A stretch of DNA of 64,000 bases from contig NIVC01000362.1 of NCBI GenBank assembly GCA_002269645.1, positions 186,001 through 250,000 on the forward strand, given 5' to 3'. Position numbers and translations under genes: made by a program. Each line of letters opens with the position of its first letter. The stretch's first letter is position 1. Origin of the DNA: Macrostomum lignano. Lineage: Eukaryota. Under the pieces are notes generated by a model. It saw only the letters and a program-made list of their open reading frames with translations, had not been told where the DNA came from and did not search any database. Positions 9,679-57,178 of the stretch are shown in pieces.

Positions 9679-9779
<101 letters not shown>

Positions 9780-11005: not shown

Positions 11006-12895
11006 TTAACTTATAACGCAACCAGAATCAGACTGAGGATTCAGGTTGGACGCCCGTCGTGACTGCCATGCAAACCTAGTATAATCGGTTCTATCCTCCA
11101 CTCGTGCATCGATAGCTTTTGTCAGCTCAGTCAACTTGGAGGAATCTTCCGGAGCCAACCGCTTGGACCGAAGCTTGTCTCTAATGAACTGATCCAAGTT
11201 GACGTCCTGGTGCAGGCCTTTCAAGCACCTGTGCGCTTTCACGAGTTCGTAGGCCGTTTTCTGCAAAGCCATCTTTGCGTCCATTCCAAGGTGATACTTG
11301 AGACGCCTCACAGCACCGCGCTGGTTCGGATTTTCTCCATACTTCTTGCTCACTTTGTCAATGGGAACAAATTCGTAGTGTTCAACCTCTCTCTGTTCGG
11401 TGCTGGTGTTCCGGTGAAGCCTCCAGTGGCAGTCGCACTCTTTACAGTATCCATCATTGTTCATGACACAACAACCTGCTTTATCTTCGTTGTTCGGTAC
11501 GCTACAATTTTCATGGCACGTACTTCGACACCTGATGCACCAAGTGATGCAGGACCGATCATCCCGACTTCTTTCTTCGATTCTGGTGCGCTTAATTCTA
11601 AAGTCGCTCTGTCCTGGGCACATTTGCTCTTGGAGCTGCTTGTTCGAGTCGTGTATGCTGAACAGGTCCTCTATTTCCTTTGCCAATCTTTCTGCTTTCA
11701 TCTCAAGTTCTTCAGCGCTTGTAGCGTCAATACCCTGTCGAAGCTTTGCACTTAAATCGCAGAGGTCGGTAGTTTGGCGACCAAACATGTTCAAAGAGGT
11801 GTCCATGCTGGTGTAGGTGAAGACGCTGTCTAAACTGCCGGCGTGATGAGCTTCAGCAAACTCATCCGAAGTGCGATGATTCACAAAACTTTGTTGCATC
11901 CGCTGCATGTACTCGCTCACATGAGTGTCCAGCTCTCTCTTGTAGCCATGCAGTGTCTCTCCGATTGAAATTTTTAACTCTGTCTCCCGACTAATCTTGT
12001 CCAAAAGGTCCTCGGACTGTTCAAGACCGGCCTTCAACGCTTGAAGGTACTGGCAGGCATCTTCCAGATGCTGCGTTTTTGTCATTGGGACTGAAGCTGG
12101 AACCGACGGGCAAAAGTAGCGCAATGGAGTGAGATGAATTTCCATTGCTTTATTCGCATCCCTCGAATCTAAAGATTTAAAATACTCTAAAACATCTGGT
12201 GGCTCTCTCATTGTCTTCCTTGGCTGCTTGAAGTCCGTGTGACACTCGATCTGATAGCTGCCAGAACTTGAAGAGCGTTTAGGCAAGTCAAATTTAGCGA
12301 ATGATCTGGCAGACTGCCCAGCATCTCTGATCCACTGTTCCACCTTCCAATCTACCAGTTCATGACAGTCAGATGTTGCTTGCTCAAAGAAGCTGGACGC
12401 ATTGGACCAGCCTTTGCAGACAATGAACGCCTTGCCTCCGTACCGGATTCCTGTCACAACGTGCGTTGCACCAGTGCTTAGCAACTTCTTCTCATTGTCT
12501 ACAGGCTCGTTGCAGCACTGAACCTCCTCAAACGCACTCTTCACGTCGTACTGCAAAGTGACGCTTCCACTGGTCTCGGTGGAGCTTGCCTCGGTGACGT
12601 ATTTTGCTGATCCTGTCATTGACTTCTCGCCGAGTTTCCACCAGGCCAATTTGAACTCAATGCAAAATCTCAGCTGGGCGTTCAGCCCCAGCTGTTCCGC
12701 TCGGCGCTTCGAGCTGTACTCGTAGTCCAGAGAAAACCTCACGCTGGGCGCATCATCCAGCCGAGTCGTCATTCGCCGAATTCGATCTGTGGGCCAGGCC
12801 GACTGTGCAATGATCCGGTGCTGTCGGATGTCATACAGCTGTCCGAGCTGAAAGGCCCGGCCCAGAGACGGGATGCACTCCGGTTGAGTCTGCAT
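11006..12895 (-). CDS. Stonustoxin/neoverrucotoxin-like MACPF/CDC-domain protein with C-terminal Cys-rich module and CaaX box (629 aa, intronless)
   Basis: N-terminus SLGRAFQLGQLYDIR matches the SNTX hallmark ALGRPFxLGMLYD; ATHVVTGIRYGGKAF matches ATHVVTxIxYGAxA. C-terminal CIRCRSTCHENC...DKAGCCVMNNDGYCKECDCHWRLHRN. Ends in CVIS-stop. Acceptor catttcAG at 12921, 26 nt upstream of the ATG. Confidence 0.85.
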   Translation of the reverse strand: MQTQPECIPSLGRAFQLGQLYDIRQHRIIAQSAWPTDRIRRMTTRLDDAPSVRFSLDYEYSSKRRAEQLGLNAQLRFCIEFKLAWWKLGEKSMTGSAKYVTEASSTETSGSVTLQYDVKSAFEEVQCCNEPVDNEKKLLSTGATHVVTGIRYGGKAFIVCKGWSNASSFFEQATSDCHELVDWKVEQWIRDAGQSARSFAKFDLPKRSSSSGSYQIECHTDFKQPRKTMREPPDVLEYFKSLDSRDANKAMEIHLTPLRYFCPSVPASVPMTKTQHLEDACQYLQALKAGLEQSEDLLDKISRETELKISIGETLHGYKRELDTHVSEYMQRMQQSFVNHRTSDEFAEAHHAGSLDSVFTYTSMDTSLNMFGRQTTDLCDLSAKLRQGIDATSAEELEMKAERLAKEIEDLFSIHDSNKQLQEQMCPGQSDFRIKRTRIEERSRDDRSCITWCIRCRSTCHENCSVPNNEDKAGCCVMNNDGYCKECDCHWRLHRNTSTEQREVEHYEFVPIDKVSKKYGENPNQRGAVRRLKYHLGMDAKMALQKTAYELVKAHRCLKGLHQDVNLDQFIRDKLRSKRLAPEDSSKLTELTKAIDARVEDRTDYTRFAWQSRRASNLNPQSDSGCVIS

Positions 12896-13907
12896 GTCGA
12901 AGTCGTTCGTCAGAATTGAACTGAAATGTTTGGCAAATAACTGTTAGTGCGAGAAAAGGGTTTGCATCTTTTGAAAATGTAATTTTATAAAGTAATAGGA
13001 ATAAATCCTTTTTAAAGTTCTACCGCTTAACATGCCCACTAGCGATTTCTCCAGGAAGGGTCCATGTTGTGTCGTAGTTAAGGGAACTAAATATGTTTTA
13101 TACAAAGGAGATGCTACGTAGCTATTCTTCTAATATGATTCTTTGCGCACTAGCCAATCAAAAAATAAAAGAAGAAAACAAAGTTTTGTTTAACAATCGG
13201 TATTTTTATTAATATACTTACTGAGAGCAAATATTTAATTGCTACGAATCTGGATTACATGCTTAAAGGTTAGTGACAGTGAAAAAATGTGCCTGCTAAA
13301 AAACTAAACCCTCATCACACACAGCTATAGTTAATATAAATTGGAGTATACTGTTTATTAAAAGAAGAAACTTCATGTTTTTTGCTTTTTTACTTTTTTA
13401 AAGTTAAAATTTAATTAGAACGCATGCAATTTACTGAATAAGAAACACGCGAGTAAGTAGAGCAAGAAGGATCTGAATAATTAGTAAAAAGCACAGGTAC
13501 TAAAAAATCTATGGTGAAAATAAAAATAAAAATCACTTATTCATAGGTGCGAAATAAAATAAACTTTATTGATTTAACAACTCAATCATGTTCTGGGTTA
13601 TTAGCGTAAATGTATATTAGCAGTAGTAGAATATGTGTACTAACCGCGGCCTATTCTGCTCAACTTGCTGTCGCGAAAAATAAATGTTGTAAAAAATCCA
13701 CGGCAAGTCAAGTAGCTATAGCTAGTTGAAAATTTAACAAGCTGTAAACACTTGATATAAAAATTTGTGAATGTGAAAATTCCAAGGCAAAAAATCTACG
13801 TCTCGACTCTACAGTTTCGTCAATTAGAAATAGCAAAATTTCGCCAGTTCACGTTTTCACAATCGAATATTGTCGATACTCACAAACAAGGGTGCCGTCA
13901 ATCTAAT

Positions 13908-15362
13908 TCAGGAATCCGATGAGAGGTTCCGGAAGGTCACCTGCACTCCGGATGCGTCAGAATCAGGAACCTCGGATTGCTCAACAGCTACTAGAGGTTG
14001 CACCAATTTGAGCTTTTGATTCCCTGGCGTGGGGCAATATTCTACTAACTTTTTGTAAAATTTCTTCTCGAGCTGTTTGTTGTTCCAGAGTTTCAATTCA
14101 ACTTGGTGCTCGAACTTTTGCAGTTCAAACAATTTCATCGGGCAAGACAGGCAGTACATCTTTTGGTTTGGTTCTGTCATGCTCCTCATGATGAATTCGG
14201 CTCTCTGGGCCTGGCTTTTAATTATCTGGGCGCCAGCCTCTCGGAACTTATTGGAAATCACAACCAGAACGTCACCGGTATCGGCGACTGCGGTGGCCCA
14301 TTCCTGTAGGTGAGCGTACTTTTTTCCGGCATCGAAAAGGTCCGTTTTCAACCCGATTTTGCTCGCTTGATTGGCAGGCTCAGCCGTGTGATCTAGAACA
14401 GCTTCCCTCACAGCATCATCAAGGGAAGACTTGAATGATTCGAGCTCCCGAACTTCCGCTTCCAGCTTCTTCACCACGTGAGTCCACGCTGTCGGTCTCA
14501 GCTTGTAAATAATTTCCTCCAGAGTAGTCAGAGCTTCTTTCAGCACTTCGTAGCAGCGAACAGTTTTGCAGATGCACGTGGGCGGTAGTGGCAGGGGCGC
14601 TGGTGGAGTGTCTTCAACCAGCAGTGACAGAGGAAGCAGGTTGACCGTCAGTGGCGATCTAGCTTCAGCAGCTTGGATTGTTTGAATGCACTTCATGGCT
14701 TCAATGAAGTTGGTCGGTGGGCTGGCCAGGTGGAAGTCTCCCTTGTAGGCAACTCGGATCTTCTGCACGACTTTCGTTTCCTCCGACGTCATGTCAAGCG
14801 AGGCAGCTCCAGAGATGCTGACCAACGATGCAAACTTGCCAATCTGAGCTTTTAGACCGCCTCCGGTTTTGTCGCTCGTTGCGGAGTCTTCTTTGTCCCG
14901 CTCGAAAAAGAACAGAGCGGCTCCGCCATACTGAATTCCCATTACTACGTGAGTCGCATCTTTGTAGCTCGCTGAGCTCTTCAGCTTCCAATCTGGTGGG
15001 ACAACAAGTTCCCAATACTTTCCTTGAACTTGCAGTCGATATATGGCGCTCTCCGTCTCTTTCTTCTCTTTTAAGGTAGTCTGGTAGTTCCCGGAGCCGC
15101 TAGCGGACACCAGTCCCGATAGAATTGACAGCGACAGGTTTCCGGTCACTTTTGTGCTCAGGTTTTTGCTGTTCGCTGACGTTTCTGTTACAATATCGGT
15201 CTCCATGCTGATGTTCTTAGTTTCGGTCAGCATAGTCTGCATCTGCTCAGCGGTGAATAACTTGATTCCGGGGATAATTTGGCTGGTCCTGCTGTTGTAC
15301 AGCGCACCAAGGGTGAATGGATGGCCCACCGCAGGAATGGTGAGAGAGCTCGATGTTGTCAT
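13908..15362 (-). CDS. Stonustoxin subunit-like protein (MACPF/CDC + helical + probable thioredoxin-like domain, no PRY-SPRY; 484 aa from Met at 15362, intronless)
   Basis: LTIPAVGHPFTLGALYNSRTSQIIPG, LSILSGLVSASGSGNY, ATHVVMGIQYGGAALFFF, KVVQKIRVAYKGDFHLASPPTNFIEA are SNTX-family motifs. The acceptor aatttcAG at 15388 favours the Met at 15362 over the ORF-track start at 15449. Confidence 0.88.
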   Translation of the reverse strand: MTTSSSLTIPAVGHPFTLGALYNSRTSQIIPGIKLFTAEQMQTMLTETKNISMETDIVTETSANSKNLSTKVTGNLSLSILSGLVSASGSGNYQTTLKEKKETESAIYRLQVQGKYWELVVPPDWKLKSSASYKDATHVVMGIQYGGAALFFFERDKEDSATSDKTGGGLKAQIGKFASLVSISGAASLDMTSEETKVVQKIRVAYKGDFHLASPPTNFIEAMKCIQTIQAAEARSPLTVNLLPLSLLVEDTPPAPLPLPPTCICKTVRCYEVLKEALTTLEEIIYKLRPTAWTHVVKKLEAEVRELESFKSSLDDAVREAVLDHTAEPANQASKIGLKTDLFDAGKKYAHLQEWATAVADTGDVLVVISNKFREAGAQIIKSQAQRAEFIMRSMTEPNQKMYCLSCPMKLFELQKFEHQVELKLWNNKQLEKKFYKKLVEYCPTPGNQKLKLVQPLVAVEQSEVPDSDASGVQVTFRNLSSDS

Positions 15363-15921
15363 CTTTGTTTCCAAACCGATTTGTAAGCTGAAATTGTTTA
15401 AATATTGTTTTTGTCTTTGAAAAATACAACTTTGAGTTTTTCTAGCCATGAAAGTTACATCGTCGCGCAGCTGATGTGCAAAGTGAAGTGTGTGATATGT
15501 ACAAGTCGTGTGTTAACGCAGAATTGACGCTAAAATTCAACAGACAAAATTGTCTTCATTTGTTGGCAGGTTTAAATGAGTCTACAGTTGAGTTACAATC
15601 TATTGAGGTAGGATGTGTATATTTTGACTATAGTACTCGTAGTAGCTAACTTAGCGTTTAATTTCCCAACCAATCATAGAATTTCCTGTTCAAAATTGTT
15701 TAAATATCTAATTTTGTTTGAATTTTTGTATGTTTGAATCTTGCCTTTTTGTTTGAATGCGTCCCCCATTTTCCCCAAAATTTAGTATAAAAGGAGGCGA
15801 GTTGGCCAAAATAAAAATTGACCTGGTGTTACCTGATTAACTATCGAGAACTCTTAGTAAGCAAACTTGAAGTTTTTGGCTAAGACTTATCTCGCTATTT
15901 CTTTCATAAAAAGGAAAACCA

Positions 15922-19624: not shown

Positions 19625-19715
<91 letters not shown>

Positions 19716-19722
19716 CATTATT
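19625..19722. repeat. (TAT)n microsatellite, probable 3' tail of the adjacent LINE
   Basis: Abuts the 3' end of the minus-strand RT fragment and reads (AAT)n on the element's sense strand. Confidence 0.9.
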
Positions 19723-20880: not shown

Positions 20881-21475
20881 AAGAATCTGCAAAAAATTAG
20901 CTTCGTACTGTACTCGTACTTCAGTGCAGCAAACTCAAGTTAGTCCAATTTTTGAAGCACTTTAAAATTCTTTTTGTAGCACATGCTGTACTTCCACTTG
21001 AACTGTATATGGAGTAACAGCCAGCTTTTATACAAAGCGGCATCAGCATTATCTTGGTGTCGCTACAAAACTTTCAACTAACAGCTCAAACTCTGAAGAC
21101 TCGTTCGCAGCCTTTACTGCCAAATAATTACCAACCAAGGACTACCATGCTAGGCCAGGGATTTTTTCGCGAGGAGGGCCAAGGGCCGCATTGTGGAAGA
21201 GCCATAGCTAGTGTTTGTCATCTCCTACGGTGGGCAAACTCCGACCCGAGGGCCACATGAGGCCTTTGAAACTTCTCTCCTCTCCTCTCTCTTCTCTCTC
21301 CTCTCTCTTTCTCTCTTCCCTCTCCTCCCAGCCCCACGCCATTACTAATTAAGTATAATACGAGTCGCATGTTAATACTTATTTATCCTTGGTACCAACC
21401 TTACCCACCTAATAAAATTCACTTGATTCTACACGTCAGTTAAATTATAGAATTTCCGGAATAATAACAGTCACA

Positions 21476-21741
21476 ATTACACCTGTCCTAATGGGCAGAT
21501 GTGCAACCGTCAGCTCAGCCTCAGCTATTGCGCGGCGCATCTGAAGGCTGCGTACCGGCTGGGACTGGAGGGTCACCACACACACCCTCAATTACCCCAG
21601 CTAATGCTGGCACCCATTTTACAGCTCTGGGTGAACTGAAGCAATGCAGAGAGTTAAGTGTCTTGCTCAAGGACACAAATATTGTTTTGAGTGGATCGGA
21701 ATCGAACCCCCGACCTTTTCAAGTCGTGAGTCCGACGCTCT
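21476..21741 (-). mobile_element. tRNA-derived CORE/MIR-like SINE, copy 1
   Basis: Minus strand has a tRNA-like head with B box GGTTCGATTCC. The central block cccattttacag...aactgaagca...gagagttaagtgtcttgctcaaggacac resembles the MIR/CORE consensus. Highly similar copy at 61917-62208. Confidence 0.8.
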
Positions 21742-24445
21742 AGATCTATAACCACTATTAATCTAAAACCCCTTGTAAGCATAGAATTTCCTGAAATGCA
21801 TGTAAGAATATTAAGCTTGAAACTCATTTTTTACGTTTTTTACATTTTCAGACGCATTTTTCATTGAAGCATCTATTAGGGTCCGCTTTTTGGTTCAGCT
21901 CGAATCTCAACCAAGGTAATAAATTCATTTAAGGCCGATCGCAGGTGAATGAACTTGCCATAATTATTGCTCTACATCTCCATCGAATGAAAGCGAAGTG
22001 TTCGCTTTTACTGCCCTTTGTGCCCTCCCCGACATGTACCTCTGTGTGCCCTCCTCCATACCTCGATCTGTTTGCCCTCGGCCCCCATACAGCTGTGCCA
22101 GCTCCGCCATACCGATCGTGCTCTCCCGACCATAGTGTACCTTTGTGCCTTCGCCATATATTCCCGTTAGCCGTCCCGGCTTTTGTCCCGGCTTTTAAAT
22201 TGCAATATAATTTTCTCGGTCAAGCAAAAATAAATGTACGTGTGACTACTTCGAGAGGGGTCTCCTTGGTATGAAAAGAGGTTTTAGACAATCCCACAGT
22301 GCAGTTTGCTGCAGGTTAATCAGTACATTTTAATATGATGGCTGCAGCAATGACCGCAATTTTATGGCTGTTGTAAATTAATTGAAATCTTTCACTAGTA
22401 AACTACACATGTACAAAATGCAGATGATGTACGAGTACATGTACAGGATGTGTTTAGGCAATACAATTACAGCTTCCACAGTCGCTAGGCGTTGGTTAAA
22501 TCATGAACAAAACGATCGATCTTTTAGCGCCTTGCATACGATACAGCTATAACAATACGTATGTGCACGTGTGCATATAAAGCGCCGCTCTCTGGTAGGA
22601 GAGATTTTGTCGCACTGAAGGAGAAGAACTTGCTCTTTCTGGAGTTCTTTGACCAACCTTGACTTCTAATAGATGAATCTCCATCGTAGTTGAGCTGAGA
22701 GCTTTATCTCAATTAATGCCAGCAGCTGCCTGCCTCCCAAATCCCGGATATGTTCCGAAACCCATTTCTTTACATGTGACATGTACATAACGTAGGTCAA
22801 TTTTTATTAATTTTGTCACAGAAAATGAAAAAATACGACTGTTGAATCACATTAGTTTTTCTTATTTTCGCAATCATAGGAGGACTCGATTGCCGCCTGA
22901 AACTTGCATTTTATCAACATCATGTTTCGTTATTACAGCCGTAGTTCAAATATTCTTAGATTAAAACAAATGGTATTCAAAAACTGAAAATGAAGCGGAA
23001 ACACTACGTTAATTGATCACTGAAAATATACAGACATCGCTAACTGTTTCGTATAAAGCAAGGAGCAGGAAATGTAATAATAATATTTAAAAAATTTCTG
23101 TATCACGCGATCTTCGTGATTCAAGTGTTACTGGTGGTGTGATTGATATTGATTGAACTGAATGAATTGTTGGCTGTATACATTCATTGTTTGGTGGCTT
23201 TGTCGATAGAATTTGTGTTGGGCCTTTAGGCCTATTCATAAAAAATCTATCCAGATCCAGACTGACAAGACAATTCAATTCCTAAGCCTAATGCTAATAG
23301 AGCCATTTAGAAGAAGAGCCTTGCCTTGGCTAACAAGTTCAAAGATCTTAGGCATAGACAGGTACATTTTACTGTATTTTAGGAGTTAGCCCTTAAGCCC
23401 AAGGGCACTAATTGCATAAACAGACCCAAACCAAGATTCTAATTTAGCCCCAAATTAATGTGACCACTGATCATACCTAAAATTGAGCTTATGCCACTAG
23501 ATAGCTTAAAAGTGTCTTGTTAAACAAGTAGGTCCAGGTGTAAAGCCTTCCTTTTTTAAATTCTGATGATCAAAGATAAAATAAACCTATAGGCTATATA
23601 GATTTCATACCTGAAACTTAATAATAACAAGCTTTTATTTATTTTTTATTTAGTATCTAGGGCTATCAGTAATGACAGGCTCTTTGAGGCTTACCTTGTT
23701 TTTTTAAAGAACTAATTTGGAAATTTAAATATCTTACATTTGATACTATTTACACTTAGCTAGTTAACTAGCTATTAACACTAGCCATGCTTAAAGATAT
23801 AATGCCATGGCCATTTCTATAATCTAAAAACTTATAGAAATGGTAGCCGTGTCCCTAATAATGACTAGGCCTATACTTATAGACATAGGCTATGTCATTA
23901 ATACTGAATGAGTTCACACTTAGACAGAGAATGGCCATGTTGCTAATATAGATTCTATTTGACACTGAAGATGGTGACAGTCTATTGCCAAAACTTAAAG
24001 CAATGATACCATTTATGCTTACATGGCAGACCTGCCTATAAGCTCTAACAGTAATAAACATGGCTACTATTTCTATAAGTACTCAGACACTATTATCAAT
24101 TGATGCTAAAGACAAAGACAATTTGCAATACAGTTTTACAAAGTTAGGCCTAATATTAATAATTAATATCAAATCAATATCAAAAGCTTTAATTATTTTG
24201 TATTTTAAAGTATATTCTTAATATCATAAATATGCAAAATGGCAGTTACTGAAATGTATAGAAGCCTAGGGTAGGGCCTAGTATCATTTTAATAGTTGCC
24301 CATGATTTTATATGCAAGTTAAAGTAATGCAATAAACTGAACAATTTGGCAGAAAACATAAGAGACAAGTCAAACCCTTGTTTAATGATTTATAATTCTG
24401 TTTTTTCATGTGCAACTCAAATCCTGGTTTCTAAGTCAAATCACA

Positions 24446-35504: not shown

Positions 35505-41786
<6,282 letters not shown>

Positions 41787-45474: not shown

Positions 45475-48400
45475 TCAGCCTTGATTAGCATAGTGCGCGT
45501 ACAGAACCCCAGGATTCTGCTGCTGCTGGTGATACAGTTGCTGCTGTTGCTGCTGCTGTTGAAGCTGCTGGCTAGGCAGAGTTCGGTACATACTGCCGCT
45601 AGTGCCGCTACCATTCACACCGTGACCATTATTAGTTCTGCCCAGTGTTGCAAACTGCTGTTGTTGCTGCTGCTGCAAAAGAAGCAACTGCTGCTGCTGC
45701 TGTTGCGGATTTAGTGGAGTCCGCTCCATCAGCAGCTCATCCTGTTCGCCGTATCCGTCAATATCTGGCGGCGGCAGTGGCGGCTTCTCGTTCGGCAAGA
45801 TCAGCGGCTTACTGGGAGCAGAGGGGCGCTCCTCCAGCTCCTCGGCGAATATGATTGGCACGTGTTTGCTGGTTAAACTGAAGTCGCCGCCGTGGCGAGA
45901 CAGGCTGGCATTGTGATACTGTTGCTGCTGCTGCTGCTGCGGGACCTGCTGCTGTTGATAAGACACGTGTCTGCTTCTCTGCTGCTGCTGACCGCCTCTG
46001 CCATTTGCTGGTTTCCTTTTATACAGACAGCAGGCCACTAGCAGAGCTACTAGCAGAGCCAGCAGCACCAGACCGCAGGCGGGAGCAACTGTAATTAACA
46101 ATACATTGGAATCTCCCATTGAAGCTGTGTCGATATCGCTGCTACTGCCCGCTGCATTGTTGTTAATGACGCCACTGTCGCTGCCTCCTCCGCCAGGATA
46201 AGCTGGATAATCCGGCACAATGGTATTAATAGGATGATGACTTTGCATATAATTATCGTACAGTCGGAATAGATCTCCATAATTATAGCTGCTGCAATTG
46301 CCTTCCAATAGGAACTCCAGGGTGTGCATTCCAATGGCATTGGAGATTAGCATTCCCGCCAGCTTCTCTGACGCTACGCGGCGGAGTATGACTAATTGAT
46401 CCACCGGACAGAATATGCGGTACCTGAGGGGCGAGTGCAAATTAATAAGTTTACTTATATCGTATAATTATCATATAGTTAGCGTTGAGAATAACGTTCT
46501 TTTAAGTTGCAAGACAAAAAAACATCTGGAGATAAGAGGGGATTAAAAAACCTGGAGATGAGGCGATTAAAAAACCTGGAGATGAGGGAATTAAACACAC
46601 CTGGAAATAAGAGGGGATTAAAGACACCAGGAGATAAGAGGGGATTAAAAACACATGGAGATAAGAGGGGATTATAAGCAGCAGGAGATAAAAGGGGATT
46701 AAAACACCTGGAGATAAGAGGGGATTATAAGCAGCAGGAGATAAGAGAGGATTAAAAACACCCGGGGATATGAGGGGATTATAAGCAGCAGGAGATAAGA
46801 GGGGATTAAAAACTCCTAGAGATAAGAGGATTTTAAAAACACCTGGAGATAAGAGGGGATTAAAACACCTGGAGATAAGAGGGGATTAAAAACACCTGGA
46901 CATAAGAGGGGATTAAAAACACCTGGAGATAAGAGATGATTAAAAACACCTGGAGATAAGAGATGATTAAAAACACCTGGAGATAAGAGATGATTAAAAA
47001 CACCTGGAGATAAGAGATGATTAAAAACACCTGGAGATAAGAGGGGATTAAAAACACCTGGAGATAAGAGATGATTAAAAACACCTGGAGATAAGAGATG
47101 ATTAAAAACACCTGGAGATAAGAGATGATTAAAAACACCTGGAGATAAGAGGGGATTAAAAACACCTGGAGATAAGAGGGGATTAAAAACACCTGGAGAT
47201 AAGAGGGGATTAAAAACTCCTGGAGATGAGGGGATTAAAAACACCTGGAGATAAGAGATGATTAAAAACACCTGGAGATAAGAGGGGATTAAAAACACCT
47301 GGAGATAAGAGATGATTAAAAACACCTGGAGATAAGAGGGGATTAAAAACACCTGGAGATAAGAGGGGATTAAAAACACCTGGAGATAAGAGGGGATTAA
47401 AAACTCCTGGAGATGAGGGGATTAAAAACACCTAGAGATAAGAGATGATTAAAAACACCTGGAGATAAGAGGGGATTAAAAACACCTGGAGATAAGAGGG
47501 GATTAAAAACACCTGGAGATAAGAGGGGATTAAAAACACCTGGTGATAAGAGGGGATTAAAAACACCTGGAGATAAGAGATGATTAAAAACACCTGGAGA
47601 TAAGAGATGATTAAAAACACCTGGAGATAAGAGGGGATTAAAAACACCTGGAGATAAGAGATGATTAAAAACACCTGGAGATAAGAGGGGATTAAAAACT
47701 TCTGGAGATGAGGGGATTAAAAACACCTGGAGATAAGAGGGGATTAAAAACACCTGGAGATAAGAGGGGATTAAAAACTTCTGGAGATGAGGGGATTAAA
47801 AACACCAGGAGATAAGAGGGGATTAAAAACACCAGGAGATAAGATGAATAACTAGAAATTGCATCTTTTAGCTTACAAATATCAGATAATTAAAACACCT
47901 GAGGATATAAAGGTGGAACATCGGTTAAATCTACGTTTGTAAAGAATCTAGCCAAACAATGCGAACAATGCAGTGGAAACAACGCACTTTCCAAATCCAT
48001 CAATAACGGCGCCGTCGCTGTCGTAACCAACCACGGTCCAATCAACCGTGAAATTCACAACACTACCAGGCACTTTTAACTGGTGCTGCAGATCGTCAGG
48101 CGGCAAGCGCATGTAGACTTTATTTCCGGACAGCGCGGCCGACACTAAGTCGTTTAGTTGTCGAAAAAATCGATATTGACTATTCGAATCTGCAACCCGA
48201 TAGCGGTCAACAGCGATACGCATTCGAACTCGATGGAAACGGAACGGGCCCCACTGAGGCTGCTCGACAACTACAGAGAGGTTGAATCGAACTGGCGGAG
48301 CGTTTGGCGACACGGTGCTGCGGACCAGCACTACGAACTGCTTGGGACCGACATCGGCGTCGAATGGAATGCCCTGAAAGGCGGCGATTTTTTAAAGTGC

Positions 48401-51400
48401 ACAGAATTTATTTACTTTAAAAGTACATCTTGGGCTAAAAGTACAAACTTTATAAAAGAAGTACGATGCAGGTAACACAGGTAAAAATATCTCAAGGACA
48501 CAAATAGTTCCGAGTGAGTTCAAGTCGAGAGTCCGACGCCCCAACCACTAGGCTGCAACCCTGGCCATTAAATATGTAAATACAACGATCTAAAAGTACA
48601 TTCTAAAGAAGCCTAGAATCCAAGTATGTAAAAAGCAATACAAACCTCAAAGCCGCGAATAGTGGCATTCCAAGCGATAAACCTATTAGCATTGCTACAG
48701 ACTTCACCGTCATCGCTAGCGTGGGTGCACAATTGCAACGGCAATACTCGCAGATTGTTGCCATAGGAATCGTTAACGCAGCCTAATCGTTTAATTGGAC
48801 GACTAAAGCCGCTACCAGCGCTAGTGGAAAATGGCAACAAGCAATACACTCCGTGCTCTTTAGTAGTGACGTAGTTCACCCGCAGTCCGGACCGGCTGCT
48901 ACTAGGAGCAAAGGTTGGCGGCCAAACGGGCTGAGGCGGCAGCATTGGGTCAGGCGTGGTGACCCTGTTCTGTCCGGTATCGGGACACGCTCCGGCCGAT
49001 GCCAGATAGTAGCGCATCGGGAATTCGTACTTGCTAGACGTGCAAGTGCCTAACGGCATGTCAATGAGCTGTATCGGTGTCAGATGGGGCGCCAGAGCGG
49101 CCGCAAAGTCTGGCCAAGGCTGGCCGTCGGCTTTGCTGTCTTTGCAATAGCGAAACATTTTCTTGGCCTCTTCAATGATTGACAGGCGAGGACAATAGTT
49201 GATGCCGTAGTTGATAATGCAGCCGAATACTAGTACCATACTGCGCGATCGGCTATCGGTGCGGTTCATCCATTTCAAATGAATGCCGGTTTCTGGCAGC
49301 AATCTACTACTACTGATAGTAATACCGACAACATTTTTTGTTTTAGTGGACAAAAATTTGCCAATTTTTTCAATAATACTGTAGAGAGGCGCTGTTTCGG
49401 TTTCCAGTTTGCGAAGATAATCTAGTTGAGATTCGACGTGCAGTCTGTACTCATGATTGACCTGCGATTTGTTAGAGTGCCGGATTATTTAGTTTGTCAT
49501 TAATGCATTTGGCCGCTTTAATGCGATTCTATAACAGGGATTTTTATTAGTGCCTAAATTGGATCTGGGATGTCAAACTGGGATTTGAGGGGGCGCCTAA
49601 ATGGGATTTGAGGGGCGCCTAAATGGGATTTGAGGGGCGCCTAAATGGGATTTGAGGGGCGCCTAAATGGGATTTGAGGAGCGCCTAAATGGGATTTGAG
49701 GAGCGCCTAAATGGGATTTGAGGGGCGCCTAAATGGGATTTGAGGGGCACCTAAATGGGATTTGAGGGGTGCCTAAATGGGATTTGAGGAGCGCCTAAAT
49801 GGGATTTGAGGAGCGCCTAAATGGGATTTGAGGAGCGCCTAAATGGGATTTGAGGAGCGCCTAAATGGGATTTGAGGGGCGCCTAAATGGGATTTGAGGG
49901 GCGCCTAAATGGGATTTGAGGGGTGCAAAAAAGGGATTTGAAAGGCGCAAAAAAGGAATTTGAGGGGGCGCCAAAATGTGTTTTAGGGACGCCAAAATGT
50001 GTTTTTAGGGACGCCAAAATGTGTTTTTAGGGACGCCAAAATGGGATTTGAGAGGCGCCAATATGGGATTTAAAGGGGCGCCAAAATGGAATTTCAGGAG
50101 GCACCGAAATGAGATTTGAAATGGCGCAAAAATGGGATTTAAAGAGGCGCCTAAATGAGATTTGAGGAGGCGCCGAAATGGGATTTAAAGAGGTGCCAAA
50201 AAGGGATTTAAAGAGGTGCCAAAATGGGAATTAGGAGATGTCAAAATTTAAAACGCAAAAAGGGACTTAAGAGAGACGTCAACATCAACTACGATAATAA
50301 TAATTTAGAACGGGCTATAAAACACAAAATTTGCTACCAGTAGTCGCAGTTGACTAACCTTATTCTGGTGAGCATAATCTTCTGTCCTAGATTCGGTCAC
50401 TTTATAGCCAACGGTTAGTACGGCAGTTTTATTATACTTGCTAGTAGCCAACAGATAGACAGGCGTAGGCAGAGCTGTCAGCTGCTGTTTTCGCCAGGCC
50501 AGACCGTACACTCGACTAGTTGTCGCGTTGAATTGCAACGGCGACTGCGGCGAAAAACTAACGCAACGATTTCTAATCGGACTGACGCAGATTCTGATAT
50601 CGTGAGCCAACGCGTGAGCGAAATAATCTGCCGGATCGATTAGCCGATTGTAGCGAAGGCCTAGAATGAGGCGGAACAGCTTCTTGTCGGCCTCGATGGA
50701 GAGTAGCCGCTGGGGCGGTTTAGGCTCCGGCACCCGGATGGTAAACCCAATGTAGGCCTGCTTGCCTCCGCTGTCCCTCACGTGCAGGCTGCACTTGTGC
50801 TGTGAACCGATGTCTTTGGCGGCTGGGTTGGGTGCGGGAGGTGTGACAGACTGTTGTTTTGCTCATATGGCAGTTAGATTGCAATGGTATATAGCCAATG
50901 CTTGTAGACACTGCTAGATCTATAGTAGCTAGATTTACAGTAGCTAGATCTGCAGTAGCTAGATCTATAGTAGCTAGATCTACAGTAGCTAGATTTATAG
51001 TAGCTAGATCTACAGTAGCTAGATCTATCGTAGCTAGACCCGCAGTAGCTAGATCTATAGTAGCTAGACCCGCAGTAGCTAGATCTATAGTAGCTAGACC
51101 CACAGTAGCTAGATCTGCAGTAGCTAGATCTATAGTAGCTAGACCCGCAGTAGCTAGATCTATAGTAGCTAGACCCACAGTAGCTAGATCTGCAGTAGCT
51201 AGATCTACAGTAGCTAGATCTACAGTAGCTAGATCTATAGTAGCTACATCTACAGTAGCTAGATCTACAGTAGCTAGATCTATAGTAGCTAGACCCGCAG
51301 TAGCTAGATCTATAGTAGCTAGACCCACAGTAGCTAGATCTATAGTAGCTAGATCTACAGTAGCTAGATCTGCAGTAGCTAGATTTATAGTAGCTAGATC

Positions 51401-54400
51401 TACAGTAGCTAGATCTGCAGTAGCTAGATCTACAGTAGCTAGATTTATAGTAGCTAGATCTGCAGTAGCTAGATCTGCAGTAGCTAGATCTACAGTAGCT
51501 AGATCTATAGTAGCTAGATCTGCAGTAGCTAGATCTACAGTAGCTAGATCTGCAGTAGCTGGATCTATAGTAGCTAGACCCGCAGATGCTAGATCTATAG
51601 TAGCTAGATCTACAGTAGCTAGATCTATAGTAGCTAAACCCACAGTAGCTAGATCTACAGTAGCTAGATTTACAGTAGCTAGATCTGCAGTAGCTAGATC
51701 TACAGTAGCTAGATCTATAGTAGCTAAACCCACAGTAGCTAGATCTACAGTAGCTAGATCTATAGTAGCTACATCTACAGTAGCTAGATCTATAGTAGCT
51801 ACATCTACAGTAGCTAGATCTACAGTAGCTAGATCTATAGTAGCTAGATCTGCAGTAGCTAGATCTACAGTAGCTAGATCTGCAGTAGCTGGATCTATAG
51901 TAGCTAGACCCGCAGATGCTAGATCTATAGTAGCTAGATCTACAGTAGCTAGATCTATAGTAGCTAAACCCACAGTAGCTAGATCTACAGTAGCTAGATT
52001 TACAGTAGCTAGATCTGCAGTAGCTAGATCTACAGTAGCTAGATCTATAGTAGCTAAACCCACAGTAGCTAGATCTACAGTAGCTAGATCTATAGTAGCT
52101 ACATCTACAGTAGCTAGATCTATAGTAGCTACATCTACAGTAGCTAGATCTACAGTAGCTAGATCTATAGTAGCTACATCTACAGTAGCTAGATCTATAG
52201 AAGCTAGATCTGCAGTAGGGAGATCTGTATTACCTAGATCAACAACAAACAATAAAGTCCCAACTCACTCGGATGGCCCTCAAGAACCATCTCCTCTGGA
52301 ATATACCGACCAAACACGCCCAACGCATTGGCGTGACCGCAACCGGTAACCGAAGTTGTCAACTCCGCCAACAAAGAGTCCTGCCTAGCGTTCGGCATGA
52401 GAACAATTCTAGTCAGGACACCAACTGGGAAACTATAAGGCTGCGAGCTTAACTGAACCAGCTGTTGAATTCCCTGCTCAGTTGTGGTTGTCGGCGCTGG
52501 AGTTGTCGAAGTCGTAGTAGGAGTCGATCGGACGGTCGGGAGTTCGATTCTACGCGTAGGAACCGGCGGCTGTGGCGGCGGCCTAGTCGGCATAGGGGGA
52601 GAAGCGAAACCGGACGACTCGGACACGGAAGAGGGCACCGCGGCGGAGTCAGACAGGAACGATCTGCCAGAGTACAGATTTGCATTGCGGCGCAACCGAG
52701 GTGACCCTCTGCCGGTGTAGCCGCCGCCGACGCCTCCATCGACAGCAGATGTCGAAGCGTCAACATCGACAATAAGATCGGCCACATACCAGAGCAGCAC
52801 AGGCTCGGGCGTCAGTTCCCCAGTGATTGCTAATCTCTCTAACCGTTCCAACGCTTTCAAATGTCTGGCATCGATGGAGCCGCAGCCGACTTGCCAGCTG
52901 ACTCGGGCGGCTTGAACGCTTCGACGAATGTTGGCGTTGCCGGGTCCGGATGCCAGGAGGTACTGGCGCGGCTGCTGCTGCCGCCTCTGCGAGTTGGGAA
53001 CGTCTGGATACACCTCCAGGGTGGAGATTTTCACCTGAAATCAATGGGGAGAGAGGATGTAGGGGGCCATTATTCAAGGGAAGTAGGGGATGTAGGAGTC
53101 GATTTTGAATAGGTGGGATGACGGAGGCGCTTTTAAGGAAGTAGAGATGTAGGAGGCGATTTTGGGGAAGTAGGGATGTAGGAGGCGATTTTGGAGAAGT
53201 AGGGATGTAGGAGGCGATTTTAGGGAAGTAGGGATGTAGGAGGCGATTTTGGGGAAGTAGGGATGTAGGAGGCGATTTTGGGGAAGTAGGGATGTAGAAG
53301 GCGATTTTGGGGAAGTAGGGATGTAGGAGGCGATTTTGGGGAAGTAGGGATGTCGGAGGCGATTTTGGGGAAGTAGGGATGTAGGAGGCGATTTTGGGGA
53401 AGTAGGGATGTAGGAGGCGATTTTGGGGAAGTAGGGATGTAGGAGGCGAGGCGATTTTGGGGAAGTAGGGATGTAGGAGGCGATTTTGGGGATGTAGGGA
53501 TGCAGGAGGCGATTTTGGGGATGTAGGGATGCAGGAGGCGATTTTGGGGAAGTAGGGATGTAGGAGGCGATTTTGGGGAAGTAGGGATGTAGGAGGCGAT
53601 TTTGGGGAAGTAGGGATGTAAGGAGGCGATTTTAGGGAAGTAGGGATGTAGGAGGCGATTTTGGGGAAGTAGGGATGTGTCATGTAGGAGGCGATTTTGG
53701 GAAAGTAGGGATGTAGGAGGCGATTTTGGGGATGTAGGGATGTAGGAGGCGATTTTAGGGAAGTAGGGATGTAAGGAGGCGATTTTAGGGAAGTAGGGAT
53801 GTAGGAGGCGATTTTGGGGAAGTAGGGATGTGTCATGTAGGAGGCGATTTTGGGAAAGTAGGGATGTAGGAGGCGATTTTGGGGAAGTAGGGATGTAGGA
53901 GGCGATTTTGGGGAAGTAGGGATGCAGGAGGCGATTTTGGGGAAGTAGGGATGTCGGAGGCGATTTTGGGGAAGTAGGGATGTAGGAGGCGATTTTGGGG
54001 AAGTAGGGATGTCGGAGGCGATTTTAGGGAAGTAGGGATGTAGGAGGCGATTTTGGGGAAGTAGGGATGTAGGAGGCGATTTTGGGGATGTAGGGATGTA
54101 GGAGGCGATTTTAGGGAAGTAGGGATGTAAGGAGGCGATTTTAGGGAAGTAGGGATGTAGGAGGCGATTTTGGGGAAGTAGGGATGTGTCATGTAGGAGG
54201 CGATTTTGGGAAAGTAGGGATGTAGGAGGCGATTTTGGGGATGTAGGGATGTAGGAGGCGATTTTAGGGAAGTAGGGATGTAAGGAGGCGATTTTAGGGA
54301 AGTAGGGATGTAGGAGGCGATTTTGGGGAAGTAGGGATGTGTCATGTAGGAGGCGATTTTGGGAAAGTAGGGATGTAGGAGGCGATTTTGGGGAAGTAGG

Positions 54401-57178
54401 GATGTAGAAGGCGATTTTGGGGAAGTAGGGATGCAGGAGGCGATTTTGGGGAAGTAGGGATGTCGGAGGCGATTTTGGGGAAGTAGGGATGTAGGAGGCG
54501 ATTTTGGGGAAGTAGGGATGTAGGAGGCGATTTTGGGGAAGTAGGGATGTCGGAAGCGATTTTGGGGAAGTAGGGATGTAGGAGGCGATTTTGGGGAAGT
54601 AGGGATGTAGGAGGCGATTTTGGGGAAGTAGGGATGTAGGAGGCGATTTTGGGGAAGTAGGGATGTAGGAGGCGATTTTGGGGGAGTAGGAGAGGATGGA
54701 TACAAGAGGCGATTATTCAGCAAAAAGTAAAGCATTTGAAATGAATTGGCAGTCTGAAAAGTAGAAGAAAAACCAGCGAGCTTCAGAAATAGAAATCCAT
54801 CATTATCGAAAACAAAAAACTTATTTAAATAAAAAAAAAATCCTGAGAAAAAAATTTACCATTTTTTAACCAAAAAAATTAACCAAAAAATCAACTCAAT
54901 CTCAATCACTTTTTGAATTTTTCGTCAAACCTCGCGCTTTCTTTTTCAACGAGTAAGGAGAAAAAATTGCAGTAGCCAATTTAAAAAGTAGGGGGCCAAA
55001 AACCAAATAGGCTCCATCCAGACTTGTCTCTGGGGGGATTCGAGGACGAAATCGGATTGCCCATTTTAATTAGCGTCAATTTCTATTCCCAAGCAATCCC
55101 GGGCAGACAATTTATGCTAATTTATTCTCCCAGTTGTAAGCTTTCTAGTTTGGGATTGAGTAGTACACAAGAAATAAGGTGGTCGCATAGAAATTAGACA
55201 GATTACTCGATTTTGGCATTTGATTCGTGCTTTTTCACTCTTGGTTTTTCGATTCTATACGCTACATTTATCTGCTAATATCGACCTACAAGAACTTATA
55301 TCTATCTGCTGGAGTTCACATCTATCTGCATCTATCTGCTGGAGCTCACATCTATCTGCTGGAGCTCACATCTATCTGCTGGAGCTCACATCTATCTGCT
55401 GGAGCTCACATCTATCTGCTGGAGCTCACATCCATCTGCTGGAGCTCACATCTATCTGCTAGAGTTCACATCTATCTGCTGGAGCTCACATCTATCTGCT
55501 GGAGCTCACATCTATCTGATGGAGCTCACATCTATCTGCTGGAGTTCACATCTATCTGCTGGAGCTCACATCTATCTGCTAGAGTTCACATCTATCTGCT
55601 GGAGCTCACATCTATATACAGTTTTATGAAAGCTACATGAATTAGAGCTTAAAGCCAACACATTAATTAGAACTCAAAAATCCAACACAGCTTCCATAAG
55701 CTGCATTAATTAGAACTCAGAAAGCCAACACAGCTTCCATAAGCTACATCAATTAGAACTCAAAAATCCAACACAGCTTCCATAAGCTGCATTAATTAGA
55801 ACTCAGAAAGCCAACACAGCTTCCATAAGCTACATCAATTAGAACTCAAAGCCAACACAGCTTCCACAAGCTGCATCAATTAGAACTCAAAAAGCCAACA
55901 CAGCTTCCATAAGCTACATCAATTAGAACTCAAAAAGCCAACACAGCTTCCATAAGCTACATCAATTAGAACTCAAAAAGCCAACACAGCTTCCATAAGC
56001 TACATCAATTAGAACTCAAAAAGCCAACACAGCTTCCATAAGCTGCATCAATTAGAACTCAAAAAGCCAACACAGCTTCCACAAGCTACATCAATTAGAA
56101 CTCAAAAAGCCAACACAGCTTCCATAAGCTACATCAATTAGAACTCAAAAAGCCAACACAGCTTCCATAAGCTACATCAATTAGAACTCAAAAAGCCAAC
56201 ACAGCTTCCATAAGCTGCATCAATTAGTACTCAAAAAGCCAACACAGCTTCCATAAGCTACATCAATTAGAACTCAAAAAGCCAACACAGCTTCCATAAG
56301 CTACATCAATTAGAACTCAAAAAGCCAACACAGCTTCCATAAGCTGCATCAATTAGTACTCAAAAAGCCAACACAGCTTCCATAAGCTGCATCAATTAGA
56401 ACTCAAAAAGCCAACACAGCTTCCACAAGCTACATCAATTAGAACTCAAAAAGCCAACACAGCTTCCATAAGCTGCATCAATTAGTACTCAAAAAGCCAA
56501 CACAGCTTCCATAAGCTACATCAATTAGAACTCAAAAAGCCAACACAGCTTCCATAAGCTACATCAATTAGAACTCAAAAAGCCAACACAGCTTCCATAA
56601 GCTGCATCAATTAGTACTCAAAAAGCCAACACAGCTTCCATAAGCTGCATCAATTAGAACTCAAAAAGCCAACACAGCTTCCACAAGCTACATCAATTAG
56701 AACTCAAAGCCAAAAACTAACCAACCAGACGCACCTGCAATTTCGCTGACAGATTTCGCAGCAGAGAGGCCAGCCGCTGAGGTCCCGCAGTCTCCGGGTC
56801 AACATCAACAAGCACGGCGGCCACTGTAGGCGGACGCCTTGAGCAGCTGGCGTTGCTGCCAAACGCCGAACCAGACGATCTGGGCAGGACTTCAACAGAG
56901 ACGCCTCCGCCCAGGTGCACATCCTTATCGCCGCTGTTCCTATCAAGCGGAACTCCTTCAATTAAGCCAGAGTCCCCATTGCGATGCAGCCAAGATGGAA
57001 GCTGTTGGGCCGACAATTCGCCAGATTTGGCTGACGCTAATCTGGCAATAAAAATTCTGCCAACCCGTGCCCGATAGCGAGGCGCTGACGTCGCGTTGCC
57101 ATGGAGACACAGGGCGGAACTGACAACGATGCAAATAATTATCAGGGCGTAGCAACGAATTTTGGCGATTATTAACAT
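45475..57178 (-). CDS. DAG1: Dystroglycan (invertebrate type, duplicated Ig-SEA module), 6 coding exons, 1274 aa
   Basis: Exons 57178-56735, 53034-52269, 50822-50359, 49461-48646, 48373-47988, 46423-45475; GT-AG, in frame, 3825 nt. Signal peptide; CADG motif LPSWLHRNGDSGLIEGVP; furin site RLRR; short P/T mucin stretch; TM TVAPACGLVLLALLVALLVACCLYKRK; beta-DG motif KHVPIIFAEELEE..SKPLILPNEKPPLPPP. Confidence 0.92.
46520..47845 (-). repeat. 27-bp minisatellite filling dystroglycan intron 5
   Basis: Sense unit GTGTTTTTAATCCCCTCTTATCTCCAG, roughly 45-49 copies. Confidence 0.97.
48491..48554 (-). mobile_element. Truncated SINE head fragment (same family as 21476 and 61917)
   Basis: ctcaaggacacaaat...ttcaagtcgagagtccgacgccccaaccac, in dystroglycan intron 4. 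Confidence 0.65.
49575..50270. repeat. 22-bp minisatellite in dystroglycan intron 3
   Basis: Unit aaatgggatttgaggggcgcct, degenerating rightwards. Confidence 0.95.
50915..52225. repeat. 15-bp palindrome-rich minisatellite filling dystroglycan intron 2
   Basis: Unit tagctagatctacag, about 85 copies. Confidence 0.98.
53055..54700. repeat. 29-bp G-rich minisatellite in dystroglycan intron 1
   Basis: Unit ggaggcgattttggggaagtagggatgta. Confidence 0.98.
55305..55615. repeat. 20-bp minisatellite in dystroglycan intron 1
   Basis: Unit ggagctcacatctatctgct. Confidence 0.96.
55630..56712. repeat. 43-bp minisatellite in dystroglycan intron 1
   Basis: Unit aagctacatcaattagaactcaaaaagccaacacagcttccat, about 25 copies. 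Confidence 0.97.

Follow-up and report, generated by a model that had tools for sequence, protein, structure and literature searches.

A tandem pair of short stonustoxin-like MACPF/CDC genes in Macrostomum lignano, candidates for an intracellular two-component pore-former

Stonustoxins and the locus

The closest described relatives of the genes analyzed here are stonustoxin (SNTX) of Synanceia horrida (PDB 4WVM) and the other scorpaeniform SNTX-type toxins, in which a MACPF/CDC-like domain starts at the very N-terminus with the motif GRPFxLGxLYD, bears ATHVVxGIxYG further on, and gives way to a helical bundle. The active toxin is made up of SNTX alpha and beta, two paralogs encoded in a cluster, and the SNTX genes of the stonefish cluster are divided into three exons (PMC10566576). 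Scorpaeniform SNTX-type toxins have no signal peptide (PMC6114736), truncated or clustered SNTX-like copies are known in fish (PMC10566576), and SNTX-like genes have already been reported in nemerteans and Glycera (PMC4986456). Hence two features that a sequence-only reading of this DNA had singled out, the absent signal peptide and the occurrence in a non-fish invertebrate, are not peculiar to the genes described here. A functional analogy is offered by two-component MACPF/CDC pore-formers (complement C5b-8/C9, pleurotolysin A/B, and the short and long CDCLs of Bacteroidota; PMC11169675), where a membrane-bound component nucleates a second MACPF/CDC component that is unable to target membranes alone. 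A similar division of labor may exist here, although these systems have only the superfamily fold in common with our proteins and act from outside the target membrane.

The window, which is the whole 64,000-nt stretch of M. lignano DNA that was analyzed, contains two intact single-exon SNTX-like ORFs, both on the minus strand, as are all features given below. ORF2 (13908–15362; 484 aa plus stop) is the upstream gene of the pair and encodes a short SNTX-like protein. ORF1 (11006–12895; 629 aa plus stop) encodes another, with a Cys/His module and a CaaX end. The intergenic spacer from the ORF2 stop to the ORF1 ATG (12896–13907) is 1,012 bp, in agreement with the first description of the pair as same-strand genes about 1 kb apart. 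The single-exon coding regions differ from the three-exon genes of the stonefish cluster. A putative acceptor site, tttcag, was read in the sequence at 15388–15393, 26 nt before the ORF2 ATG, and again at 12921–12926, 28 nt before that of ORF1; as it precedes both ATGs, there may be a 5'UTR intron or trans-splicing. At a second M. lignano locus (L001), the transcript-based model of P0004 begins right after the same tttcag. ORF2 can also be read from 15449 as a 513-aa protein, but the added upstream stretch is not conserved at L001, while the ATG at 15362 is; we therefore take 15362 as the real start. The surroundings did not fit the earlier picture of a TE-rich zone devoid of conserved genes. 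Intra-window repeats make up only 4–10% of the flanking DNA within 1–25 kb, and two genes, one LRR and one dystroglycan-like, are located at 40–46 kb. Within 1–25 kb there was no coding-looking ORF of at least 110 aa besides ORF1, ORF2, and ORFs overlapping them.

SNTX identity of the two proteins

ORF1 carries the motifs GRAFQLGQLY and GATHVVTGIRYGG and ORF2 the motifs GHPFTLGALY and DATHVVMGIQYGG, all read directly, and these correspond to the columns of highest conservation in the SNTX family. In phmmer searches against PDB, SNTX-beta was matched by ORF2 with E=1.9e-32 and by ORF1 with E=3e-13, so that homology to SNTX is far above chance. The earlier reading had made a MACPF/CDC fold a point to be checked, and both predicted folds have 4wvm_B as their top Foldseek match (ORF2: E=3.5e-19, TMq 0.61, alignment 452 columns; ORF1: E=4.1e-14). 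The AF2 models have a pLDDT of 80 (pTM 0.75) for ORF2 and 74 for ORF1. Identity to stonustoxin over the structural alignment is nevertheless 17–20%, and the Pfam MACPF_SNTX model scored below its gathering cut-off for each protein.

The two proteins had been called otherwise very divergent, and they are: identity is 28% over 180 aa (E=6e-9), in comparison to about 50% for SNTX alpha and beta. A neighbor-joining tree, which has no bootstrap support, joins ORF2 to the long forms described below and gives ORF1 a long branch; by this placement the two do not form a matched alpha/beta pair of recent duplication. It was also correctly noted that both proteins are without a signal peptide and a PRY-SPRY domain: the conserved domain starts at residue 8–9, and Pfam finds no PRY/SPRY in either. 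Neither has a TM helix (maximum Kyte-Doolittle 19-residue mean 0.77 and 1.04). Stonustoxin differs from both in having thioredoxin-like and PRYSPRY domains, and from ORF1 in having neither a Cys/His module nor a CaaX box. Overall, identity and architecture taken jointly leave us with little doubt that ORF1 and ORF2 are genuine SNTX-branch MACPF/CDC proteins and old paralogs.

Short forms of a GTPase fusion family

The architecture of ORF1 is best understood by comparison with a family of fusion proteins. Full-length members of about 1,200 aa consist, in order, of MACPF_SNTX, helical, thioredoxin-like, FN3, and AIG1/septin-like GTPase domains and a Cys/His module, which normally sits after the GTPase. 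Such long forms are found across animals, in M. lignano (three members, e.g., BOX15_Mlig029040g1 and Mlig032689g1), fish (e.g., Gouania willdenowi LOC114479060), and mussel, and both ends of the architecture, MACPF/helical and Cys/His module, occur in 64 of the top 150 relatives.

ORF1, which is 91% identical to M. lignano BOX15_Mlig004669g4, shares with this family its N-terminal MACPF/CDC-like domain (aa 1–262, 12110–12895; AF2 model and Foldseek), its helical domain (aa 274–390, 11726–12076; AF2 helices, with a marginal HMM match at aa 278–336), and the C-terminal Cys/His module and following helices. Collinearity with the long forms (P0006, P0012, P0005) extends through the helical domain to about aa 370 and resumes at aa 431, but the thioredoxin-like/FN3/GTPase core of ~550 aa is missing, and there is no P-loop. 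Among the 63 relatives with both domains, the distance from N-terminus to zinc motif is shortest in ORF1 (445 aa; median 1,001). The Cys/His module (aa 440–500, 11396–11578) has ten ligands (C453, C456, C460, H461, C464, C475, C484, C487, C489, and H494) that are invariant or nearly so in about 120 relatives and all kept in ORF1. It is modeled with a pLDDT of 91–97 and is probably zinc-binding; we found neither a Pfam model nor a PDB sequence relative for it. The C-terminal helical region that follows (aa 512–616, 11048–11362) retains a degenerate version of the family segment LxEIALKPNPL..EYIDxLI. ORF1 ends in CVIS (11009–11020), a CaaX box and predicted farnesylation signal. CaaX-like C-termini are present in 12 of 152 relatives, canonical ones are absent from the M. 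lignano long forms, and the L001 paralog of ORF1 terminates in CTIS even though a 53-codon indel lies directly upstream. The sequence comparison thus places ORF1 as a short form, in which MACPF and helical domains run straight into the Cys/His module that elsewhere follows the GTPase, and which has gained a CaaX box at its C-terminus.

ORF2 is also a short form. Its MACPF/CDC-like domain (aa 1–250, 14613–15362) is closest to those of the M. lignano long forms and is modeled, with pLDDT mostly 85–97, as a bent beta-sheet with two helical clusters. Next is a four-helix bundle (aa 261–375, 14238–14582; helices at 261–288, 294–323, 329–344, and 348–375) that, as modeled, is equivalent to the SNTX helical/FAT domain; the family helical-domain HMM matches it marginally (aa 270–320). 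Nothing of the long form is kept beyond the bundle, where an orphan tail (aa 376–484, 13911–14237) begins. A thioredoxin-like domain had been proposed for one partner. ORF2 does not supply it: the family thioredoxin-domain HMM has no match in ORF2, and past residue 376 AF2 predicts just helices and a low-confidence tail (pLDDT <50 from residue 411) with no beta-strands. No relatives of the tail were found by sequence.

With long-form domains missing from both proteins, an ORF2 tail that has neither relatives nor a confident fold, and Pfam scores under cut-off, the ORFs could be functionless, decaying remnants of long forms that are open by chance. Comparison with L001, where the pair recurs with order and orientation unchanged, makes this very improbable. 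Nucleotide similarity between the loci is restricted to the two coding regions (91–93% identical), the spacer being almost wholly unalignable, and dN/dS against the paralog is 0.34 for ORF1 (p=1e-7) and 0.42 for ORF2 (p=2e-5). These values, together with conservation of only the coding regions, indicate that both genes are under purifying selection, although the constraint is only moderate. Each segment tested, the ORF1 C-terminus and the ORF2 tail (0.37, p about 1e-3) among them, had a dN/dS significantly <1. The ten ligands and the CaaX box are intact, and the paralog has a transcript-based gene model, which likewise argue against decay.

A possible intracellular pore-former

The earlier proposal of a Cys-rich module and a membrane anchor in the same partner held for the module and probably holds for the anchor, although not as a TM segment: judging by its C-terminal residues, the anchor of ORF1 is probably the CaaX farnesylation box. 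Prenylation is a cytosolic modification, and guanylate-binding proteins are CaaX-prenylated cytosolic immune effectors. In these, as in ORF1, a C-terminal CaaX occurs on a protein related to immune-type GTPase families, which suggests lipid anchoring at the cytosolic face; the likeness is limited to predicted membrane attachment, as ORF1 has no GTPase domain and no sequence homology to them. A cytosolic, membrane-tethered ORF1 is therefore a reasonable inference from the predicted anchor. This bears on whether the proteins are instead defensive or predatory toxins, released by gland-cell lysis or non-classical secretion and hitting foreign cells from outside. We regard release as unlikely given the conserved CaaX box, the company that the ORF1 module otherwise keeps with cytosolic-type AIG1/septin-like GTPases, and the lack in both proteins of the venom-toxin PRYSPRY domain, even though SNTX-type venom toxins are also without signal peptides (PMC6114736) and SNTX-like transcripts of nemerteans and Glycera have been interpreted as toxins (PMC4986456, PMC4202326).

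ORF1 and ORF2 look like intracellular pore-formers. Because neither has a signal peptide, both would be made in the cytosol. ORF1 would be farnesylated at CVIS and so brought to the cytosolic face of membranes, with its zinc module as a regulatory or recognition element. ORF2, in which Pfam and the AF2 model reveal no recognizable membrane-targeting domain, would be recruited through contacts between MACPF domains and between helical domains, of the kind seen in the SNTX alpha/beta dimer. In a mixed oligomer TMH1 and TMH2 would then unfurl into a beta-barrel pore. Candidate segments lie at aa ~58–108 and ~164–213 in ORF1, where the beta hydrophobic moment of AQLRFCIEFKL in TMH1 exceeds the protein mean by 3 SD, and at aa ~59–102 and ~157–202 in ORF2, both with beta-amphipathic stretches. 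The role may be cell-autonomous defense, or regulated lysis of the cell or a compartment. An A/B partnership is plausible, with the clustered SNTX alpha and beta as a precedent (PMC10566576). In favor of the mechanism we count the retained beta-amphipathic segments and the occurrence of the pair at both loci while long forms are solitary (no SNTX-like neighbor within 10 kb of the M. lignano long-form genes). The mechanism as a whole, partnership included, is put forward tentatively, at somewhat less than an even chance.

The earlier reading had proposed a check for the same pairing at other loci, and it does recur, at L001; the two loci are duplicates within one genome, however, and represent one independent observation of adjacency. 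ORF1 and ORF2 may accordingly be independent paralogs left adjacent by an old tandem duplication, each working by itself, whether as a homo-oligomer or in some role other than lysis. Their divergence and separation in the tree are consistent with this, as are the fish SNTX-like clusters, in which variable, truncated domain sets are common and most members are not regarded as subunits of a toxin (PMC10566576). The L001 copy of ORF2 has a frameshifting 1-bp deletion in an A-run, which reflects an assembly error or else points to a dispensable partner. We consider independence doubtful but worth taking seriously, since it leaves ORF2 without a targeting domain and does not account for similar constraint on both genes or for short forms being paired where long forms are not.

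Pore formation is thus predicted for both proteins from the cytosolic side, with ORF1 as the putative anchored partner. Its Cys/His module appears to have been inherited from a widespread, little-studied family in which a toxin domain is fused to a GTPase.

The SNTX-like gene pair and its second copy

Two intact, single-exon coding sequences related to stonustoxin (SNTX), the alpha/beta toxin of stonefish, are located on the minus strand of the window. The upstream gene, ORF2, extends from 15362 to 13908 (484 aa), and the downstream gene, ORF1, follows after 1,012 bp, from 12895 to 11006 (629 aa), in agreement with the arrangement of two uninterrupted genes about 1 kb apart on one strand that had been proposed from the sequence. 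Overlapping frames aside, the window has no other long ORFs in its first 25 kb. Both proteins were found to contain the two signature motifs of the family, GRPFxLGxLYD at the N-terminus and ATHVVxGIxYG in a core strand, present as GRAFQLGQLY and GATHVVTGIRYGG in ORF1 and as GHPFTLGALY and DATHVVMGIQYGG in ORF2, all of which correspond to invariant or near-invariant columns of family alignments. Neither protein has a signal peptide, as had been noted earlier, with the conserved domain beginning at residue 8–9 and no hydrophobic N-terminal segment. An exact-sequence look-up of the two proteins in a public gene collection showed that neither was on record.

ORF1 shares 91% identity with BOX15_Mlig004669g4 of M. 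lignano, a gene on contig NIVC01004600.1 (locus L001). A homolog of ORF2 (L001 7455–8893; 82–90% protein identity) is present directly upstream of that gene, in the same order and orientation as in the window. The paired architecture thus occurs at another locus, one that is a within-genome duplicate and hence represents a single independent adjacency. Nucleotide similarity between the loci is limited to the two coding regions (93.5% and 91.5%), and the DNA between and around the genes can hardly be aligned at all. Comparison of the copies by the Nei-Gojobori method revealed dN/dS values of 0.34 for ORF1 (dS 0.14, one-sided Fisher p = 1e-7) and 0.42 for ORF2 (dS 0.14, p = 2e-5), with constraint in every sub-region tested, including the tail of ORF2 and the C-terminal third of ORF1. 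The ORF2 homolog at L001 is unannotated in GCA_002269645.1, and one of its A-runs has lost 1 bp. The sequence 3' of this deletion is still under constraint (dN/dS 0.37), so that the deletion either arose very recently or is an error of the assembly; a homopolymer error in long reads and a real frameshift appear equally likely.

The start of ORF2 was placed at the ATG at 15362. A longer, 513-aa reading from the ATG at 15449 was dropped, as a 5-bp indel disrupts the extension in the L001 paralog. Similarity between the two loci starts just a few bases ahead of the ATG at 15362 and, together with the indel, this led us to take the 484-aa protein as real. The sequence tttcag precedes both ATGs (at −28 nt in ORF1 and −26 nt in ORF2), and a transcript-derived "partial" gene model at L001 begins exactly 3' of the same tttcag. 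These features point to coding regions that are intronless and to mRNAs whose 5' ends are probably spliced or trans-spliced. The long-form gene Mlig032689g1 (L003 10001–13636, contig NIVC01000573.1), which encodes 1,211 aa, is also one uninterrupted ORF, so intronless coding seems to be family-wide in M. lignano and not a property of the short pair alone.

The DNA around the pair has several other features. About 1 kb upstream of ORF2 is a near-perfect inverted repeat (16420–16633/16762–16974; arms of 214 bp with 98.6% identity, separated by 128 bp), possibly a MITE-like element or a hairpin. Long microsatellites, (AG)47 at 9683–9776 and (TTA)33 at 19625–19722, flank the pair. A dispersed repeat of ~200–300 bp (83–87% identity) was observed at 21458–21742 and 61898–62203 and at L001 (9266–9466), where it sits between the two SNTX-like genes. 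About 48% of the span from 25001 to 64000 consists of intra-window repeats, especially 50720–54735 and 57780–60976. This span has long ORFs overlapping in several frames on both strands, compositional Pfam matches (GLTT repeat, HC2, extensin-like) and strong GC skew, and it looks like low-complexity, coding-like repeat arrays. The surroundings had been described as devoid of conserved genes, which was not borne out, as the window contains a leucine-rich repeat ORF at 40208–41320 on the minus strand (LRR_8, E = 6e-28) and an ORF with a dystroglycan match at 45475–46440, also on the minus strand (DAG1, E = 4.5e-13).

Predicted fold and domain make-up

Stonustoxin was the sole significant match for both proteins when they were searched directly against the PDB with phmmer. 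ORF2 matched SNTX-beta at E = 1.9e-32 (4wvm_B, aa 4–300) and SNTX-alpha at 2.3e-32, and ORF1 matched SNTX-beta at E = 3e-13 (4wvm_B, aa 8–349) and SNTX-alpha at 8.4e-8. The Pfam family PF24674 (MACPF_SNTX) gave 22.6 bits for ORF1, against a gathering cut-off of 27, and was not reported for ORF2. Several undoubted long-form relatives score just 29–36 bits with this model, and the shortfall probably reflects the divergence of ORF1 and ORF2 and a limit of the detection tool, and not absence of the domain.

AlphaFold2 models were built on alignments of 51–52 relatives. The ORF2 model (pLDDT 80, pTM 0.75) has a confident MACPF/CDC-like domain at aa 1–250 followed by a four-helix bundle at aa 261–375, and the ORF1 model (pLDDT 74, pTM 0.59) has a MACPF-like domain, a helical domain (aa 274–390) and a very confident small domain near aa 450–500. 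Each model shows a bent central β-sheet with the helical clusters TMH1 and TMH2 at its sides, which is the arrangement of the MACPF/CDC fold. In Foldseek searches of the PDB, 4wvm_B was first for both ORF2 (E = 3.5e-19, TMq 0.61, 452 columns) and ORF1 (E = 4.1e-14); SNTX-beta and SNTX-alpha led both lists, followed by TgPLP1, MPEG-1, perforin, C8/C9 and the cholesterol-dependent cytolysins. The fold that had been expected is thus predicted for both proteins, and their identification as SNTX-branch MACPF/CDC proteins is correct. The TMH1 and TMH2 regions contain β-amphipathic stretches, up to 3 SD over the mean of each protein, which are compatible with, and no proof of, a possibly retained capacity to form hairpins.

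A canonical SNTX toxin has the order MACPF-FAT-THX-PRYSPRY. ORF1 and ORF2 share the MACPF domain and the FAT-like helical domain after it, which is predicted in both models with marginal sequence HMM matches only, but they have neither THX nor PRYSPRY. The absence of PRY/SPRY, already recognized from the sequence, was seen with Pfam at E ≤ 1 in the whole ORFs and at E ≤ 10 in the isolated C-terminal regions. The thioredoxin-like domain that had been assigned to ORF2 was not found there, neither by Pfam (PF18078) nor by an HMM built from 39 thioredoxin-like domains of the family. ORF2 can be aligned only as far as the end of the helical domain, and the model gives its final 74 residues no β-strands and a pLDDT <50. 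In ORF1, the family thioredoxin HMM returned noise only and PF18078 had no match; a match to EAD9 (E = 0.06–0.13) was also counted as noise. With regard to an AIG1/septin-like GTPase, no P-loop motif (G-x4-GK[ST]) and no Pfam match were found in either protein.

Long forms, the Cys/His module and the CaaX box

An exhaustive representative search with ORF1 recovered 604 proteins at E ≤ 1e-3, and both ends of ORF1 were matched by 64 of the 150 top relatives. (In a word-indexed homolog search with a profile that contained long forms, FN3-rich proteins, sidekick and myosin-binding protein C among them, dominated the output, which was of no use.) The long forms are animal proteins of ~1,150–1,300 aa with the Pfam order MACPF_SNTX, Stonustoxin_helical, Thioredoxin_11, fn3 and an AIG1/septin-type GTPase, and then a C-terminal region that has no Pfam assignment. 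They include Mlig029040g1, Mlig032689g1 and Mlig008863g2 of M. lignano and proteins of the fish Gouania willdenowi and the mussel Mytilus edulis. The C-terminal region also occurs after stand-alone AIG1/septin-like GTPases and after GTPases with other N-terminal domains, e.g., B-box. Among the relatives, WP_321486095.1 ("GTPase", uncultured Draconibacterium sp.) clusters at 90% with an SNTX-GTPase protein of animal type (relatives P0044/P0189, P0017), and is therefore probably a eukaryotic contaminant in a bacterial bin; for an Acipenser family entry, the source itself gives the flag UNVERIFIED_CONTAM.

The core of the C-terminal region is a module of ten invariant or near-invariant residues, C-x2-C-x3-C-H-x2-C-x10-C-x8-C-x2-C-x-C-x4-H. 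All ten of these Cys/His ligands are kept in ORF1, in a region modelled at pLDDT 91–97, and the module resembles a zinc-binding domain. No Pfam family covers it, and a profile search of the PDB gave no solved relative at sequence level. Echoes of C1-type zinc fingers were sub-significant (E about 0.2 and 0.03), and we do not claim that identity. Collinearity of ORF1 with the long forms extends over the helical domain as far as ~aa 370 and resumes at aa 431, so that ~60 aa occupy the place of ~550 aa. The distance from its N-terminus to the zinc motif, 445 aa, is the shortest among 63 two-domain relatives (median 1,001). Compared with the long family, ORF1 shares the Cys/His module and lacks the GTPase, whereas ORF2 has neither.

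ORF1 ends in CVIS and its L001 paralog in CTIS, with Cys at −4, an aliphatic residue at a2 and the final S that, like M, A or Q, is suited to farnesyltransferase; both are canonical CaaX boxes for that enzyme. The window copy lacks 53 codons found in the paralog, and this indel lies directly upstream of an NPQSD segment and the four-residue end, which have been kept. CaaX-like ends were observed in 12 of 152 relatives (e.g., CVIQ, CVIM, CIIV and CNIL), and the long forms of M. lignano have no canonical ones. A transmembrane helix in ORF1 was ruled out (maximum Kyte-Doolittle 19-residue mean 0.77), and none was found in ORF2. Of the proposal that one partner supplies a Cys-rich module and a membrane anchor and the other a thioredoxin-like domain, the first half stands for ORF1, with the predicted anchor being a CaaX box and not a transmembrane helix, and the second half does not stand for ORF2. 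Prenylation is a cytosolic process and, with the signal peptide absent, the most economical reading is that ORF1 would be an intracellular, membrane-tethered protein.

A two-component pore-former?

Whether ORF1 and ORF2 act together can be approached from several sides. ORF2 has no recognizable targeting domain and ORF1 has a predicted anchor; the short forms occur as a pair at each of the two loci, and neither of the two long-form genes inspected has another SNTX-like gene less than 10 kb away; and the constraint on ORF1 and ORF2 is similar. There is also the precedent of SNTX alpha and beta, clustered paralogs that jointly form the toxin (PMC10566576). Based on these points, a partnership of the two proteins is possible, at somewhat less than an even chance. 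Close behind it is the alternative that they are paralogs that act independently. Against the partnership, L001 duplicates the window pair, leaving their adjacency seen once independently, one of the ORF2 copies carries a frameshift as assembled, and the two proteins share just 28% identity, a divergence that the sequence-only reading had described. A neighbour-joining tree without bootstrap, which is weak evidence, also placed ORF2 among the long forms and ORF1 on a long branch.

We consider the finding made from the sequence to be real and the mechanism proposed with it to be plausible. If the partnership holds, ORF1, anchored by its farnesyl group and bearing the zinc module, would sit at the cytosolic face of a membrane, recruit soluble ORF2 to perforate the membrane from inside; the long fusions would be GTP-regulated, cytosolic pore-forming immune effectors, and the pair a GTPase-independent offshoot of them. 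This full scheme we regard as unlikely. Such a two-component pore, if true, would be the counterpart in the perforin superfamily of executioners of the gasdermin/MLKL type.

SNTX-like genes are known from nemerteans and Glycera (PMC4986456, PMC4202326), and many clustered, domain-truncated sntx-like genes are present in fish genomes (PMC10566576). It follows that neither the occurrence of such genes in a flatworm nor their tandem order or truncation is new as such. Scorpaeniform SNTX-type toxins also generally have no signal peptide (PMC6114736). Our literature searches (Macrostomum with stonustoxin, MACPF with AIG1, and Mlig004669) returned no description of the ORF1 and ORF2 genes, of the long MACPF-GTPase fusion architecture, of the Cys/His module, or of a GTPase-less, CaaX-ended short form like ORF1.

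A pore-forming domain without a signal peptide, with a conserved prenylation signal and in a large animal family that has an immune-type (AIG1/septin-like) GTPase and a zinc-type module, points to pore-formers that would act from the cytosolic side. To our knowledge, MACPF/CDC proteins have nearly always been studied as secreted or lumenal weapons, and we know of no demonstration in this superfamily of pore formation from the cytosolic side. Not covered by any Pfam model and lacking a relative of solved structure, the Cys/His module merits definition as a family. Transgenesis and RNAi are feasible in M. lignano, and ORF1 and ORF2 represent a minimal and convenient experimental entry to the function of the SNTX branch outside venom.
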